Origin: Octopus sinensis
Lineage: Eukaryota
DNA: 64,000 nt
NCBI RefSeq assembly: GCF_006345805.1
Contig: NC_043024.1
Location: forward strand, 5,146,001-5,210,000
Direction of reading: 5' to 3'
The notes beneath the pieces are model-generated. The model saw nothing but the letters and a program-made list of their open reading frames with translations. It searched no databases and was not told the origin of the DNA. Position 1 is the first letter of the stretch. Every line of letters starts with the position of its first letter. Below are positions 129-48,419 of the stretch, one piece after another. The position numbers and the translations under genes were made by a program.

Positions 129-142
129 TGGAGTTAGTTCCC

Positions 143-1823
143 TAACGTTTGACGTCGGTTGTGTTTTTCTCGGCTCGTAGAATTCGGTGAAAAAGAACAA
201 AAAGTGTTGTTGTTGTGGAGTTTTGAACTTCGGTTGATGCGGTTTCGCGTCACACTGGTTCTGCGCGTTGCACTGTTTCTGTTTGGGCGACCGTTTTCGG
301 TCTGAGGAGATTATGAGCCGCCTCTCCCTAACTGGTGAGATGGCCGGGAGGAATTTATTTGAAAGTTTGCTGGAATTGTCAACATCTGAGGAGGAGTTGG
401 AAGAAGCAGTGGCAAAAATGGACAGGAAGCTGGAAAGTACCTACGCAGGAATAATGAGGAAGTCGATAGAAAAAGAGGTGGACCTGGCTAAACTACCAGG
501 CTTCCAGAATTTTATGAAGGAGGAGGAAAACGGCGAAGTCGAGCTGTCACCTCCAGCAAAGCGGAGCGAGTGGTTCAATCGTAGAACCATAAAATATAGA
601 GTGTACGTGAATGGAGGAAGAAAGATGGAAATAGTCAATATGGAAGTTATTGAAGAGGCATTGAAACAGACTGGAGAGGAAATTGTTTACCTGACTGGAG
701 GAATGGAGTATGGAACGGTAACGGTGCAGTATAGAAGTGAGAACGTCGCCAAAAAAATAGCAGCCAAGGTGGTGAAGACCGAGAAAATATACTTACTGCC
801 CTCGTATCTAAATAGAAGGACCACAAGAATTAGGGTGGAGGGAATACCTCCACACCTAGAGGGTGAATACATAACGGCAGCGGCGATTAAGGGAAACGAG
901 GAAAAGGTGGACATCCTCCACGCCACGATGAAATACGAAGGCGTGAGAGGTGCTACCTTGGACATGAATATACAGACGGAGGCGGAAACAATGGAAAGGC
1001 TGACAGATACTATAAGAACAGGGAACATTATTATGAGAGTGTGGGTGGAGGGCAGGGCACCCAGGTGCTATAAGTCTGGCCTGAGGGGTCACATAAGAGC
1101 CTACTGCCCTCCCCCACCAAAGGAAAAGGAAATCGTTACGGAACCCCAAAAGAAGGAAGACACTAAAGAAAAGGAGAACCAAACAGAAAGGGAAGCAACT
1201 GAAGAGGAGGAGATCCAGCAAGAGTGGCAAGAAGGGATAAAAAAAAGGAAAAGAAAGAAAAAAGAAAACAGTACGAAACCCCAACCCACCCGTACCCTCT
1301 GAGTCCCATCCCTCCCCTGCAAACAGCGATTCCACCCACTCCCCGCCTACAAGAAAAACAAAAACAAATGCAGACACACAGAAAGAACAAAGTCCCAGGA
1401 CCTATTTTTTGTGTGTTGCGAGGAGAAGGGACACCCAGAACCCGAAAAGGATGGTACATAAAGACTTATGGCCCGAACATGAAGATGGTAGTTACGCGGT
1501 TTTGGAATTTGAATTTATGGAGACATTGGTGAGGAAGGGTGAGGAAGAGCGTATAAAACGGATGACAGTGCCGATGCAGGGTGAAATGATAGAGATGTAT
1601 GAAAGGAAAACGAAGAGTGTGATAGAAAAACTAGGAATTGTAATTGGAAATGGGTGATAAAGGACAGGTAAGTGATGCTGGCGGATGGGGCCGAGAGCGT
1701 CGCTTTCATATTATCATTTTTTCATTTGATAATTCATTGTTCATAAATTTAATTATAATGTTCTATGTCCCCAATGTTTTGTAATGTCCCCTCTTCGTCG
1801 CCCCTGGTAGGTAATAAAGAAAT
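143..1823 (+). mobile_element. Non-autonomous Tx1-like retroelement family B (ORF1 kept, no EN/RT)
   Basis: Flanked by direct repeat GGAGTTAGTTCCC (130-142 and 1825-1837); gag-like ORF; ends ...GGTAATAAAGAAAT; second copy at 32701-33762. Confidence 0.85.
313..1302 (+). CDS. LINE ORF1 / gag-like protein with CCHC zinc knuckle
   Basis: First ATG at 313 (the track start at 268 is a TTG); knuckle CYKSGLRGHIRAYC here and intact CYKCGLRGHIRAYC in the 32.8 kb copy; probable continuation in other frames to 1657. Confidence 0.8.
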   Translation: MSRLSLTGEMAGRNLFESLLELSTSEEELEEAVAKMDRKLESTYAGIMRKSIEKEVDLAKLPGFQNFMKEEENGEVELSPPAKRSEWFNRRTIKYRVYVNGGRKMEIVNMEVIEEALKQTGEEIVYLTGGMEYGTVTVQYRSENVAKKIAAKVVKTEKIYLLPSYLNRRTTRIRVEGIPPHLEGEYITAAAIKGNEEKVDILHATMKYEGVRGATLDMNIQTEAETMERLTDTIRTGNIIMRVWVEGRAPRCYKSGLRGHIRAYCPPPPKEKEIVTEPQKKEDTKEKENQTEREATEEEEIQQEWQEGIKKRKRKKKENSTKPQPTRTL

Positions 1824-47292: not shown

Positions 47293-48419
47293 AGGGGAAC
47301 TAACTCTTGTCTTTAAATATTAACGGCTTTACTGATATATATTTGAGTAGCAGTGTAGCCCGGCGTTGCTAGGTATTAAGTGATGGAGCGCTTTATTTCA
47401 AACCAAAATAAGTGACAATGACATCACATTTGAGCGAAATCTGCTGAAATTGGCAAAAGTTTGGCTGAAAGTCGGATCGCAGGCAATTTGATTGGGAAAT
47501 ACCATAAGGAATCAGTTTATCGATTATAATAATAATAATGAAATTATTGTATACAGTGCTCAGGTGCACCACAACTTGTCAGAAAGTGCGTATAAAGTAT
47601 ATGCAGTAATGTACAAATGTCTGGAAAGGGAACAGTGTAAGAGTCAGATACATGCTTGCGTGTGTATGGAGGGGAGAAAATCAGGTGTAGTGTTGGTGAA
47701 TCTCAGGAAGCATGGAAGTTTTGAAGGATGCTGTGCTCCGACAACTAACAACTGATGCCGCCAGTTTGTTCCATGCTTCAGCAACTCTCAGCGTGATTGT
47801 TTTTTTTCTTTTTTTTTGAGAACTTAAAGCATTCAATGAGTCCTAAGTCTTTCGTTTGTCACTGTTATTTATGACATATTCCATCTCAGTTACGCTCGTA
47901 TGAATAAACTAGGGTGTGTCAGCACCATAATCGTTCGTGCATTTCTACCGCTTCTAAGTTTTTTTATCCTGTTTTCCTGAATTTTTGTGGCCCCCTCCCC
48001 CTCCAATTTCTTCCTTTTTCACTTTTTCCGTAACCCTAAACCTAAGACCCCAATCCTAACTGTAACCTTAACAACCTAATCCTAAGTAGAAAAATTGTTG
48101 TAAAGTTCCTTAAGGTAAAACCAGTACAAACGCCCGAGCGATGTCATAAATGAAAATGGCAGACAAAATATACACTGCTGATAGTTGGTAACAACACCAG
48201 TAATTTTCTTCAGCTGAATACACATCATTGATTGGTTGAAATTACCAAATACGGCAACTTTAACACGAAATAATTTTGAATATAGAAAGTTTTCTCAACA
48301 ACGCTAAGAGTAAAAGATGTTCTATAAGACACATTCTGCCAGTATATAAAATTTCAAGGTATTTAGTTAAATCAGGAATAATCTGTTTAAATCAGGAATA
48401 ATTTTGTTTAAATGATTTG

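Follow-up and report, generated by a model that had tools for sequence, protein, structure and literature searches.

The 64-kb stretch of octopus DNA analysed here (the window) carries a cluster of C2H2-ZNF units, and in half of them inserted elements abut the same short sequence, GAGTTAGTTCCC (the motif). The question raised by this locus is whether the elements were aimed at that sequence or came to lie beside it in some other way.

The motif and the 5' end of the ZNF units

The motif had 8 exact matches in the 64-kb window against 0.26 expected from shuffles, none of which reached 8, and allowing one mismatch added no further match on either strand of the window. Every match belongs to a C2H2-ZNF unit and is located ~33 nt inside the conserved sequence at its 5' end. 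The first-pass annotation had placed the motif only at the upstream edge of the ZNF block; the restriction to the 5' block held for 8/8 matches, but the position is not the very edge. Unit homology continues upstream of the motif for ~29-33 nt in the divergent units 3 and 6, and for 62-270 nt among units 2, 4 and 5. Target sites were empty in 3/6 units and occupied in the other 3/6, with 4 inserts in total. Direct reading of the junctions (Table 1) agreed with the annotation that the motif is empty at 10244, 11984 and 18950, is doubled around inserts at 131/1826 and 44743/47293, and forms a 5' junction at 32689.

In every complete unit the 5' block was found at a constant distance from, and in constant orientation to, the coding exon. 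A GTAAGT donor is located ~310 nt downstream of the motif, and in unit 1, where the ORF opens at 4201, an acceptor (..TTGAAG/AG) lies immediately 5' of the ATG. TATA-like boxes were observed ~32 nt and ~13 nt upstream of the motif. From the TATA-like box, the limit of conservation, the donor and the acceptor before the ATG, we infer that the target is the ZNF promoter. Since the target lies ~33 nt inside the conservation limit and just downstream of the TATA-like boxes, it most likely coincides with, or is no more than a few nt away from, the point where transcription of a non-coding first exon begins.

A further TATA-like box, TATTTAAG, occurs ~104 nt downstream of the motif and, if used, would set the insertion site upstream of the start. 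Long ZNF reading frames are kept in 2/3 of the occupied units, and unit 2 has only a solo 5' block, joined to the 3' flank of the unit. A protein search with the ZNFs returned mostly generic vertebrate ZNFs, and a metagenome scan with the conserved exon-1 block gave no match. Within the window no copy of the conserved 5' block was detected outside ZNF units, and Rfam at gathering thresholds found no small-RNA gene (snRNA, tRNA, rRNA), the usual class of Tx1 target, at the insertion site or in the whole window. The spread of ZNF units by LINE read-through (3' transduction) was rejected; the empty units share 30-270 nt of upstream homology and the units keep their intron.

Table 1. Positions of the motif, elements, ZNF exons, target copies and junctions in the 64-kb window; (motif) stands for GAGTTAGTTCCC.
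Feature	Position (strand)	Description
Motif, + strand	131, 1826, 10244, 11984, 18950, 32689 (+)	
Motif, - strand	44745-44756, 47295-47306 (-)	
A1	1..128 (+)	last 128 nt of family-A element, cut by window start; ends ..CATAATAAAGAAATA
Target copy between A1 and B1	129..142 (+)	TGGAGTTAGTTCCC, sandwiched
B1	143..1824 (+)	complete family-B element, ~1.68 kb; ends ..GGTAATAAAGAAATC
B ORF1	313..1302 (+)	329 aa, LINE ORF1-like, degenerate CCHC knuckle (RCYKSGLRGHIRAYC)
Target copy downstream of B1	1825..1837 (+)	GGAGTTAGTTCCC, opens ZNF unit 1
Unit 1 5' block	1838..2144 (+)	putative non-coding exon 1, ends at donor TAT/GTAAGT (unit alignment)
Unit 1 ZNF coding exon	4228..5592 (+)	454 aa, ~15 C2H2 fingers (Pfam)
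Empty site, unit 2	10244..10255 (+)	..TTTGAAGACTG(motif)GTTGTT
Empty site, unit 3	11984..11995 (+)	..TTTAAAGCCAA(motif)CTTGTT, AA / CTTG variant
Empty site, unit 4	18950..18961 (+)	..TTTAAAGACTG(motif)GTTCTT
Target copy upstream, unit 5	32687..32700 (+)	TGGAGTTAGTTCCC
B2	32701..33762 (+)	first 1062 nt of B, 98.1% identical to B1
C copy 2	39602..39804 (+)	SINE-like; 21-bp TSD (one mismatch), non-motif site
Unit 6 ZNF coding exon	41313..42344 (-)	343 aa (Pfam)
Target copy downstream of A6	44743..44758 (-)	AAGAGTTAGTTCCCCT, opens unit 6
A6	44759..47292 (-)	family-A element, ~2.53 kb; ends ..CATAATAAAGAAATA
A ORF	45015..47096 (-)	693 aa, RVT_1 + zf-RVT (Pfam)
Target copy upstream, unit 6	47293..47308 (-)	AAGAGTTAGTTCCCCT
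A'	55707..56496 (+)	older, diverged A-like 3' part, interrupted by other repeats
C copy 1	58304..58526 (+)	SINE-like, B-type tail ..TGTCCCCTCT..CCTTGTGGGTAATAAAGAAAT, TSD AGGTATA, non-motif site
A1/B1 junction		..AATAAAGAAATA-TG(motif)-TAACGTTTGACG
B1/unit 1 junction		..AATAAAGAAATC-G(motif)-GTTGTT
Unit 5/B2 junction		..AAAGACTG(motif)-TAACGTTTGACG
Unit 6/A6 junction, 5' side	(-)	..AAAGACAA(motif)CT-TGAACTTTC
A6 junction, 3' side	(-)	..AATAAAGAAATA-AA(motif)CT-CGTTAAC

The inserted elements and their relatives

The inserts belong to two families, A and B, which end in the common terminus TAATAAAGAAAT and carry AATAAA 6-7 nt before the element end without a poly(A) tail. Their sequences otherwise differ, with only the last 12 nt in common. 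Target-site duplications (TSDs) of 13-18 bp were found at the inserts; junction positions vary by no more than 1 nt among the three on the 3' side and by no more than 4 nt among the three on the 5' side. The TSDs follow local variants, with TG at the A1 junction and AA on both sides of A6. Unit 1 carries an A-TSD-B-TSD tandem, arranged as A1 - TGGAGTTAGTTCCC - B1 - GGAGTTAGTTCCC - unit 1. Every insert runs in the same direction as its ZNF unit, as had been annotated; since the target is asymmetric, this co-orientation is automatic and gives no independent evidence. Apart from the older diverged A', no further A or B copy was detected in the remaining ~58 kb of the window. The same target thus flanked 4/4 A/B copies in this one window, which represents one ZNF cluster, and the published criterion for a target-specific LINE is >20% of a family's copies with the same flank (Kojima 2015, PMC4494074).

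In A6, whose 5' boundary can be placed to within 2-4 nt, a non-coding leader of ~200 nt precedes the RT-only ORF, and the 3' UTR measures 256 nt. The first ~336 nt lack homology to ORF2, so the element is not a simple 5' truncation. No remains of APE or ORF1 were detected in the leader by similarity search, and an origin of the leader from unit sequence was rejected, there being no similarity to any unit. Over the shared 3' end A1 and A6 were identical at 126/128 positions (98.4%), which reproduced the earlier count. The A ORF matched RVT_1 (E 4e-33) and zf-RVT (E 4e-10) in Pfam, and its best match among solved structures was human L1 ORF2p residues 500-938 (E 6e-41), compared with E 1e-22 for R2 proteins, which were matched in the RT core only. 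An R2-type site-specific LINE was ruled out by this restriction to the RT core and by the zf-RVT C-terminus. Cephalopod relatives were 56-60% identical to the A ORF, and an APE domain is present in most of its 1,100-1,160 aa homologues, while this endonuclease domain was absent from every A and B copy in the window. A metagenome scan with the 3' junction gave no match, and neither did exact look-ups with the A ORF and with ten ORFs of the window. The older A' was 59-75% identical to A across three matching pieces, and its 3' end adjoins non-motif sequence.

In B1 a leader of 170 nt is followed by a coding region with ORF1 only and by 520 nt of 3' sequence, and no remains of ORF2 were found in B by homology search. 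B1 and B2 start with the same nucleotides and were identical at 1041/1061 positions. On the 3' side of B2, a deletion with 4-nt microhomology (TGAA) joins the element to the unit 5 intron, most of which is lost together with exon 1 and the remainder of B. B ORF1 had no match in Pfam or in a word-indexed protein search; 197 relatives were obtained at E<=1e-3, and it was 29% identical (E 2e-29) to an Argonauta ORF1 located upstream of ORF2. This Argonauta hians LINE is full-length, with ORF1 followed by an ORF2 that carries APE (Exo_endo_phos, E 4e-12, Pfam), RT and zf-RVT. Its ORF1 has an intact CCHC knuckle, the Pfam zf-CCHC match being under the curated cut-off, and the element has the tail GGCTAATAAAGAAAT and a 17-bp TSD at an AT-rich insertion site. 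Comparison of the 5' leaders among A, B and the Argonauta element gave scores no better than those of shuffles. Two further relatives, P0007 and P0008, yielded one perfect tandem array and no usable flanks.

The L1-like RT, the ORF1 homologue and the TSDs support A and B as non-LTR retrotransposon insertions, and the best explanation of the sequence comparisons appears to be that both derive from one cephalopod LINE lineage of L1/Tx1 type. The sequence AATAAAGAAAT also terminates a SINE-like repeat (C) at 58526, away from the motif; ~40 nt of the C tail are of B type, and the two C copies lie at unrelated sites with their own TSDs. Because SINE C, the Argonauta relative and the older A' are all at non-target sites, specificity cannot be attributed to the lineage as a whole or to the tail.

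Candidate mechanism and alternatives

The reading that we favour, and regard as probable, is site-specific target-primed insertion of two young non-autonomous LINE derivatives at the ZNF start, using the APE of a trans-acting master. A would retain only the RT-bearing ORF, and B only ORF1, of a full-length lineage organised as ORF1 followed by APE-RT-zf-RVT, and both would enter the target at a single fixed position, through target-primed reverse transcription. A sequence-specific APE, supplied by a master copy outside the window that would be ~5.5-6 kb long, would nick in trans the bottom strand 1-2 nt upstream of the motif and the top strand 0-4 nt downstream, and 13-18 bp would be duplicated. 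On the target TTTAAAGACTGGAGTTAGTTCCCGTTG, the bottom strand is predicted to be cut opposite the bond that precedes the motif by 2 nt, and the top strand right after CCC; the flank expected at A/B 3' ends under site specificity is (N)NGAGTTAGTTCCC. The ZNF promoter may transcribe the co-oriented insert, and the AATAAA may cause this RNA to end within the downstream target copy. Such a target-ended RNA could anneal to the nicked target and prime cDNA synthesis at a precise position, which would explain the absence of a poly(A) tail. The multicopy ZNF family may tolerate the insertions. Since an insertion would regenerate the target on both sides, a second element could land beside the first, giving the tandem of unit 1.

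An unlikely alternative is that the lineage is specific for repeated DNA as such, with a motif block that is not a functional ZNF promoter, so that "promoter targeting" is incidental. Known Tx1 targets do include DNA transposons, LTR elements and satellites (Kojima 2015, PMC4494074), and the TATA-like box downstream of the motif also speaks for this reading. Against it, the block keeps its distance and orientation to the coding exon, ends in a splice donor that is paired with an acceptor immediately before the ATG, and has no copy elsewhere in the window, where Rfam found no small-RNA gene either. Furthermore, homology in the divergent units starts only ~33 nt upstream of the motif, at the TATA-like box, as would be the case for a core promoter with exon 1.

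We consider it equally doubtful that specificity comes mainly from the template RNA, whose target-derived 3' end would pair with paralogous sites and be inherited by location, rather than from an endonuclease. The position of AATAAA and the missing poly(A) tail are consistent with this proposal, as is the lack of APE in both families. A and B use the same site though they are alike only in the last 12 nt, and a SINE with the B tail at other sites is hard to explain if the endonuclease of a shared partner alone sets the target, although B and the SINE may rely on separate partners whose tails are alike. Co-transcription with the target is known to strengthen specific integration (Kojima 2015, PMC4494074), but the read-through transcripts are hypothetical and pairing is unable to make the first nick. 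The nick position varies by no more than 1 nt at TG and AA sites alike, and a staggered TSD of 13-18 bp is typical of a sequence-specific APE. In its fullest form, to which we give no more weight, the lineage would be at home in the ZNF transcription start, where the host promoter transcribes it and target-ended RNA guides homing instead of, or besides, an endonuclease. Homing of this kind would explain how two complementary endonuclease-less families, one RT-only and one ORF1-only, persist at the same nucleotide.

It is much less probable that each family inserted once and was then copied by segmental duplication, gene conversion or unequal crossing-over, with no target specificity. The tandem units clearly recombine, as seen in the solo block of unit 2 and the deletion in unit 5, and in the pre-array segment the units show a star-like pattern of pairwise identity (93-96%) that would fit continuing homogenisation. 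Nevertheless, the elements are younger than their flanks, with element copies 98% identical and flanks 82-93% identical. B1 and B2 differ at 20/1061 positions against 29/442 in the unit 1/unit 5 flank (p=1.7e-5), a comparison in which the directly adjoining flanks cannot be used, A1 lying upstream of B1 and the deletion downstream of B2. A1 and A6 differ at 2/128 against 39/214 in the adjacent unit 1/unit 6 block (p=5.6e-7); the contrast of the A copies with the pre-array segment was weak (2/128 against 23/436, p=0.09). In addition, the nearest relatives of the occupied units are empty (unit 1 and unit 2, 96%; unit 5 and unit 4, 97%), and the two A copies differ in context, A1 being followed by B in a TG-type unit and A6 being the sole insert of an AA-type unit. 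The A6 TSD has the local AA..CT variant on both sides, which conversion from a TG-type donor would not be expected to yield, and the A-TSD-B-TSD tandem requires two separate events at one site in any case. Since the elements are younger than the flanks and the TSDs carry the unit's own variant, independent target-primed insertion fits better than co-duplication or gene conversion, in line with the annotation, which had taken the A copies in divergent paralogues as independent insertions. Insertion at the same nucleotide in front of ZNF genes occurred at least three times, and probably four.

A regional hot spot without sequence recognition, such as open chromatin or R-loops at active promoters, would suit a site that is probably at a transcription start, and promoters are preferred by other mobile elements such as Tf1 and MLV that show no strict sequence specificity, but this reading is highly improbable here, all four inserts being nucleotide-precise and none of A or B lying elsewhere in or around the units.

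Relation to known site-specific elements

To our knowledge, site-specific LINEs have so far been found to target RNA genes, simple repeats, telomeres and other transposons. R1 and R2 in rDNA use a multicopy gene as a safe harbour, are co-transcribed with it, and carry target sequence in their RNA that aids precise integration. R2 has a C-terminal restriction-like endonuclease, whereas the C-terminus of A is zf-RVT, its relatives carry APE and the target is not rDNA. For B, the closest likeness in structure is HAL1 (half-L1) of mammals, which has a 5' leader, ORF1 and the LINE 3' end but no ORF2. B shares this organisation and differs in being site-specific in the window and in having a knuckle-bearing ORF1 (degenerate, C..S), not one of Transposase_22 type.

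The annotation had described Tx1-clade LINEs as often target-specific, which is borne out by Kojima 2015 (PMC4494074), where TSDs of ~16 bp and tandem inserts sandwiching a TSD are also reported. The targets include the Tx1D piggyBac for Tx1L, U2 snRNA genes for Keno and Mariner-N4_AMi for Tx1-Mar and SINEU-3, the latter two forming tandem inserts around a target copy (Kojima 2015, PMC4494074). The elements of the window resemble this group in the fixed sequence of a multicopy target, the TSD length, the TSD-sandwiching tandem, non-autonomous partners that share a target, a lineage that is probably of APE type and a probable dependence on transcription from the target. In contrast to Tx1 targets, the site here is the 5' end of Pol II transcription-factor genes and not an RNA gene, microsatellite, satellite or transposon. 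The copies also differ from Tx1 LINEs in being without APE; Tx1 membership is tentative, and the best match among solved structures is human L1 ORF2p.

The nearest precedent for a protein-coding target is ingi/RIME, a LINE and its non-autonomous partner that insert at one position of the trypanosome RHS multigene family, with one or more elements per site and with many family members being pseudogenes. The RHS site is within coding sequence, whereas here it is the putative promoter or 5' exon of metazoan ZNF genes; ingi belongs to a different clade and to a polycistronically transcribed genome, and 2/3 of the occupied units here keep long ZNF frames. A ZNF family as multicopy target had been annotated as an undescribed class. 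No ZNF case was found in the literature, so that part stands, but owing to the ingi/RIME precedent the novelty is narrower than had been proposed. The locus thus represents a familiar strategy, a site-specific LINE in multicopy genes, on a target class that we could not find described in the literature. If true, a Pol II transcription-factor family used as harbour, probably at the transcription start, would be a new target class. Site-specific LINEs are natural models for RNA-templated targeted gene insertion, and new specificities widen the toolbox.

Octopus ZNFs have been predicted to be transposon repressors (Wells 2023); if this is the case, the elements would be lodged in the promoters of genes that may repress them. 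For the evolution of the large cephalopod ZNF clusters, the inserts matter as additional homology at which unequal recombination can take place, and single paralogues may be silenced or rewired by them. In this window 3/6 of the 5' ends are occupied, and one of the occupied units has decayed.

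Target sites in the tandem ZNF units

Self-comparison and unit-by-unit mapping revealed a cluster of tandem C2H2-ZNF units, six of which (u1–u6) keep a conserved 5' block starting near the motif GAGTTAGTTCCC. The motif was matched 8 times in the 64-kb window, where shuffled sequence gives an expectation of 0.26, and scanning the window gave no further copies with one mismatch. The first-pass annotation had described motif sites that are either empty or duplicated around inserts, and direct reading of the junctions confirmed this. Past the motif, the 5' junctions at 131 and 32689 continue into the identical new sequence TAACGTTTGACGTCGG, and the one at 47295 (−) into CT-TGAACTTTCATC. 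At the 3' junctions ..TAATAAAGAAAT precedes the motif, plus A-TG (131), C-G (1826) or A-AA (44745, −); these three junctions account for three of the five occurrences of AATAAAGAAAT in the window (0.18 expected).

The ZNF coding exon is a single ORF, opening only ~27 nt before the ATG and preceded by ..TTATTCTTGAAG/AG, and the 5' block terminates in TAT/GTAAGT ~310 nt past the motif (2144, 12260 and 19268; in u6 GTAAGT lies earlier in the block, at 44537). On these splice-like signals, a unit would comprise a core promoter, then a non-coding exon 1, ~2 kb of intron and the ZNF exon. The divergent u3 and u6 become homologous to the other units only from a TATA-like (T)ATAAAG ~33 nt before the motif. 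A second such element, 13 nt before the motif, reads TTTAAAG in every unit but u2, which has TTTGAAG. A transcription start at the motif or close to it would produce this pattern, and we infer that the site is the putative ZNF promoter or transcription start, although a further TATA-like box is situated ~104 nt downstream of the motif. Rfam gave no RNA genes anywhere in the 64-kb window, so the target is not a classical small-RNA target.

In u2 (10183–11003) the putative promoter and ~240 nt of exon 1 are joined to the 3' flank with the target site intact, indicating that the gene body was deleted. In u4, ~65 nt directly upstream of the motif (18868–18933) are duplicated ~250 nt further upstream (18620–18684) with 91% identity.

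Features of the window (positions in nt)
Feature	Position	Strand	Description
GAGTTAGTTCCC matches	131, 1826, 10244, 11984, 18950, 32689	+	
GAGTTAGTTCCC matches	44745, 47295	−	
u1	motif 1826	+	occupied: tandem A1 and B1
u2	motif 10244	+	empty, ..TTTGAAGACTG(motif)GTTGTT; solo 5' block joined to the unit's 3' flank
u3	motif 11984	+	empty, ..TTTAAAGCCAA(motif)CTTGTT
u4	motif 18950	+	empty, ..TTTAAAGACTG(motif)GTTCTT
u5	motif 32689	+	occupied: B2, then deletion
u6	motif 44756	−	occupied: A6
Seventh ZNF unit	50312 down to 48411	−	without 5' block
Second, shorter C2H2-ZNF family	51671–52806, 60423–61560	−	2 copies, 89% identical, without GAGTTAGTTCCC block; mapped at ~52.0–52.8, 60.75–61.56 kb
A1	1–128	+	3' end of second family A copy; 126/128 identical to A6
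A6	47292/47294 down to 44759	−	~2.53 kb
B1	143–1824	+	170-nt leader, 329-aa ORF, 520-nt 3' region
B2	32701–33762	+	98.1% identical to first 1062 nt of B1
SINE-like family, copies	58304–58526, 39602–39804		
SINE-like family, fragments	9127–9257, 56160–56262, 36254–36368, 51239–51369		
Older A-like 3' portion	55707–55857, 55863–55951 (inverted), 56262–56496		59–75% identical to A over three pieces
~310-bp interspersed repeat	7440–7751, 11503–11811, 38305–38627, 38907–39218, 43666–43988, 50881–51192	both	6 copies, 87–91% identical; probably another SINE
Mobile-element remains	29812–31404, 28899–29423, 23531–24349	−	Ty3/gypsy-type pol fragment (RT, RNase H, integrase zinc-binding domain), mariner-type transposase fragment, unrelated LINE RT
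Long (AT)n microsatellites	62432–62849, 58821–58949		

The family A and family B elements

The A6 ORF (693 aa) contains RVT_1 and zf-RVT. Its best relative of solved structure is human L1 ORF2p (residues 500–938, E 6e-41), and R2 proteins match it in the RT core only. The closest database relatives are 56–60% identical, including one from the octopod Argonauta hians, and many longer homologues (1,100–1,160 aa) additionally carry an APE domain. An endonuclease was absent from the A6 ORF and from every copy in the window. The initial ~336 nt of A6 are closed by stops in all frames and resemble neither APE nor ORF1 nor ORF2, while homology to the 5.76-kb Argonauta element (a full-length relative) begins at the equivalent of nt 3164. 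Since this start has no coding homology, A6 combines a leader with an RT-only ORF and is not simply truncated at its 5' end.

The B1 ORF gave no Pfam match and no relatives in a word-indexed search. The B ORF aligned to the Argonauta ORF1 directly upstream of ORF2 (29% identity, E 2e-29), including the CCHC knuckle, which is intact in Argonauta (KCFICQKPGHLKSVC) and degenerate in B (RCYKSGLRGHIRAYC); an exhaustive HMMER scan found 197 further relatives. The B ORF is homologous to LINE ORF1, and B is therefore an ORF1-only derivative, with a layout that we take to be comparable to mammalian HAL1. B2 ends in a jump into the u5 intron through TGAA microhomology. Sequence common to A and B is limited to the last 12 nt, TAATAAAGAAAT. 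The last ~40 nt of B resemble the tails of the Argonauta LINE (..CCCTTGTGGCTAATAAAGAAAT) and of the SINE-like repeat in the window, whose own last ~40 nt match both (..TGTCCCC..CCTTGTGGRTAATAAAGAAAT).

The Argonauta element (from Argonauta hians BAAFZT010000001.1, locus L001) has its 3' UTR twice within 12014–12649 of that locus (12014–12285 and 12421–12649, ~135 nt of other sequence between), is enclosed, doubled 3' UTR included, by a single 17-bp target-site duplication (TSD), and shows one interruption of ORF2 near 9871–9878. Another full-length relative, 41% identical, with ORF1 and an APE-RT ORF2 (ENA ERZ25071366, contig ctg14421c, 15,884 bp), repeats perfectly, head to tail, every 6,484 bp with two 100% identical inter-copy junctions, which reflects a genuine tandem array or else a circle in the assembly. 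The older A-like portion is interrupted by a SINE fragment and by part of its own tail in inverted orientation, and its 3' end adjoins ATAACAATAATTAAC.., elsewhere found after the arrays of the second ZNF family (51716–51925 and 60468–60677, −).

Junction structure and probable independent insertion

Family A ends in ..GAAATA, followed by TG and the motif (A1) or AA and the motif (A6). The TSD of A6 is AAGAGTTAGTTCCCCT on both sides (16 bp, or 18 bp allowing one mismatch), B is flanked by (T/C)GGAGTTAGTTCCC (13–14 bp), and the second-strand nick lies 0–4 nt past CCC. The end positions of A and B place the first-strand nick at a point that varies by no more than one nucleotide, in TG and AA contexts alike. 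These junctions are the signature of target-primed reverse transcription (TPRT) with staggered nicks.

ATAAAGAAAT at the element ends (117–130, 1813–1825 and 44757–44770) places ATAAAG ~11–12 nt upstream of the regenerated target, resembling the native TTTAAAG that precedes this point by ~10 nt. This may be coincidence, or a way of keeping a TATA-like box before the ZNF gene after insertion.

Independent insertion rather than co-duplication had been proposed in the first-pass annotation, and the comparison of copies with flanks favours this. B1 and B2 differ at 20/1061 positions versus 29/442 in the sole comparable u1/u5 flank (Fisher p = 1.7e-5), and A1 and A6 at 2/128 versus 39/214 in the adjacent u1/u6 block (p = 5.6e-7), although against the more conserved pre-array segment (23/436) the latter contrast reaches only p = 0.09. 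Occupied units are not one another's nearest relatives: u1 is nearest to empty u2 (96.1%) and empty u4 (94.7%), and the u5 upstream flank to empty u4 (96.6%). Conversion from one donor would not give unit-specific targets, whereas the duplicated target of A6 shows AA..CT, the variant proper to u6, on either side and that of A1 bears TG. The A1-TSD-B1-TSD arrangement requires two events at one site under any scenario. Independent hits number at least three, probably four, and fall on three of the six available sites. No A or B sequence was found elsewhere in the window, a single 64-kb window that is itself a ZNF cluster by construction, and we estimate that the probability of landing by chance on one of the six homologous positions, among ~128,000 position-orientations, is negligible. 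The evidence from the window gives good support to repeated retrotransposition, precise to the nucleotide, into the 5' ends of paralogous ZNF units.

Proposed mechanism, its limits and known systems

Two non-autonomous LINE derivatives integrated precisely and repeatedly, in TPRT fashion, at one ZNF 5'-block sequence. Since no copy in the window has an endonuclease, the nicks would be made by a sequence-specific APE acting in trans, supplied by a master element elsewhere. Co-oriented inserts could be transcribed by the putative ZNF promoter; both B copies begin at the identical nucleotide directly after the target, and comparison of the A, B and Argonauta leaders found no similarity. Because AATAAA lies only 6–7 nt from the element end and none of the copies carries a poly(A) tail, the RNA 3' ends may form inside the downstream target copy. 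Such RNA would pair with the nicked target, so that the last base of the element would be the exact start of cDNA synthesis. We retain as a less likely rival a stronger form of this model, in which specificity resides mainly in the RNA end.

The target specificity is not shared by the whole lineage, since the Argonauta element occupies an AT-rich site (TATTTTTAAAATTTGTA), the older A-like fragment (55707–56496) adjoins sequence other than the motif, and the two SINE-like copies with an intact B-type tail lie at places without relation to the motif, each flanked by a TSD of its own (21 bp in one, at least 7 bp in the other). Either B and the SINE-like repeat rely on distinct partners whose tails are alike, or target choice depends on more than the partner endonuclease.

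Target-specific Tx1 elements use a piggyBac element, a mariner family, LTR elements, U2 and U5 snRNA genes, 5S rRNA genes, satellites and microsatellites as targets, and show 16-bp TSDs and tandem inserts sandwiching a TSD (Kojima 2015, PMC4494074). The A and B inserts match them in behaviour, whichever clade, Tx1 or L1, they belong to. Trypanosome RHS genes are a hot spot for ingi and its non-autonomous partner RIME, often with more than one insert per site and with many copies becoming pseudogenes, and are an earlier case of a protein-coding multigene family as LINE target. The proposal that the target class was undescribed therefore stands only in part: no LINE aimed at ZNF gene starts was found in the octopus ZNF and transposon literature searched, but a protein-coding family has this precedent. 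ZNF 5' ends are best filed as a new target class for a known type, the site-specific APE-type LINE with non-autonomous partners.

Among the other repeats, the unrelated LINE RT lies inside the u4 intron and is ~26% identical to A. The overlapping ORFs of 150–300 aa on both strands at 62.4–63.3 kb are due to the (AT)n tract at 62432–62849.
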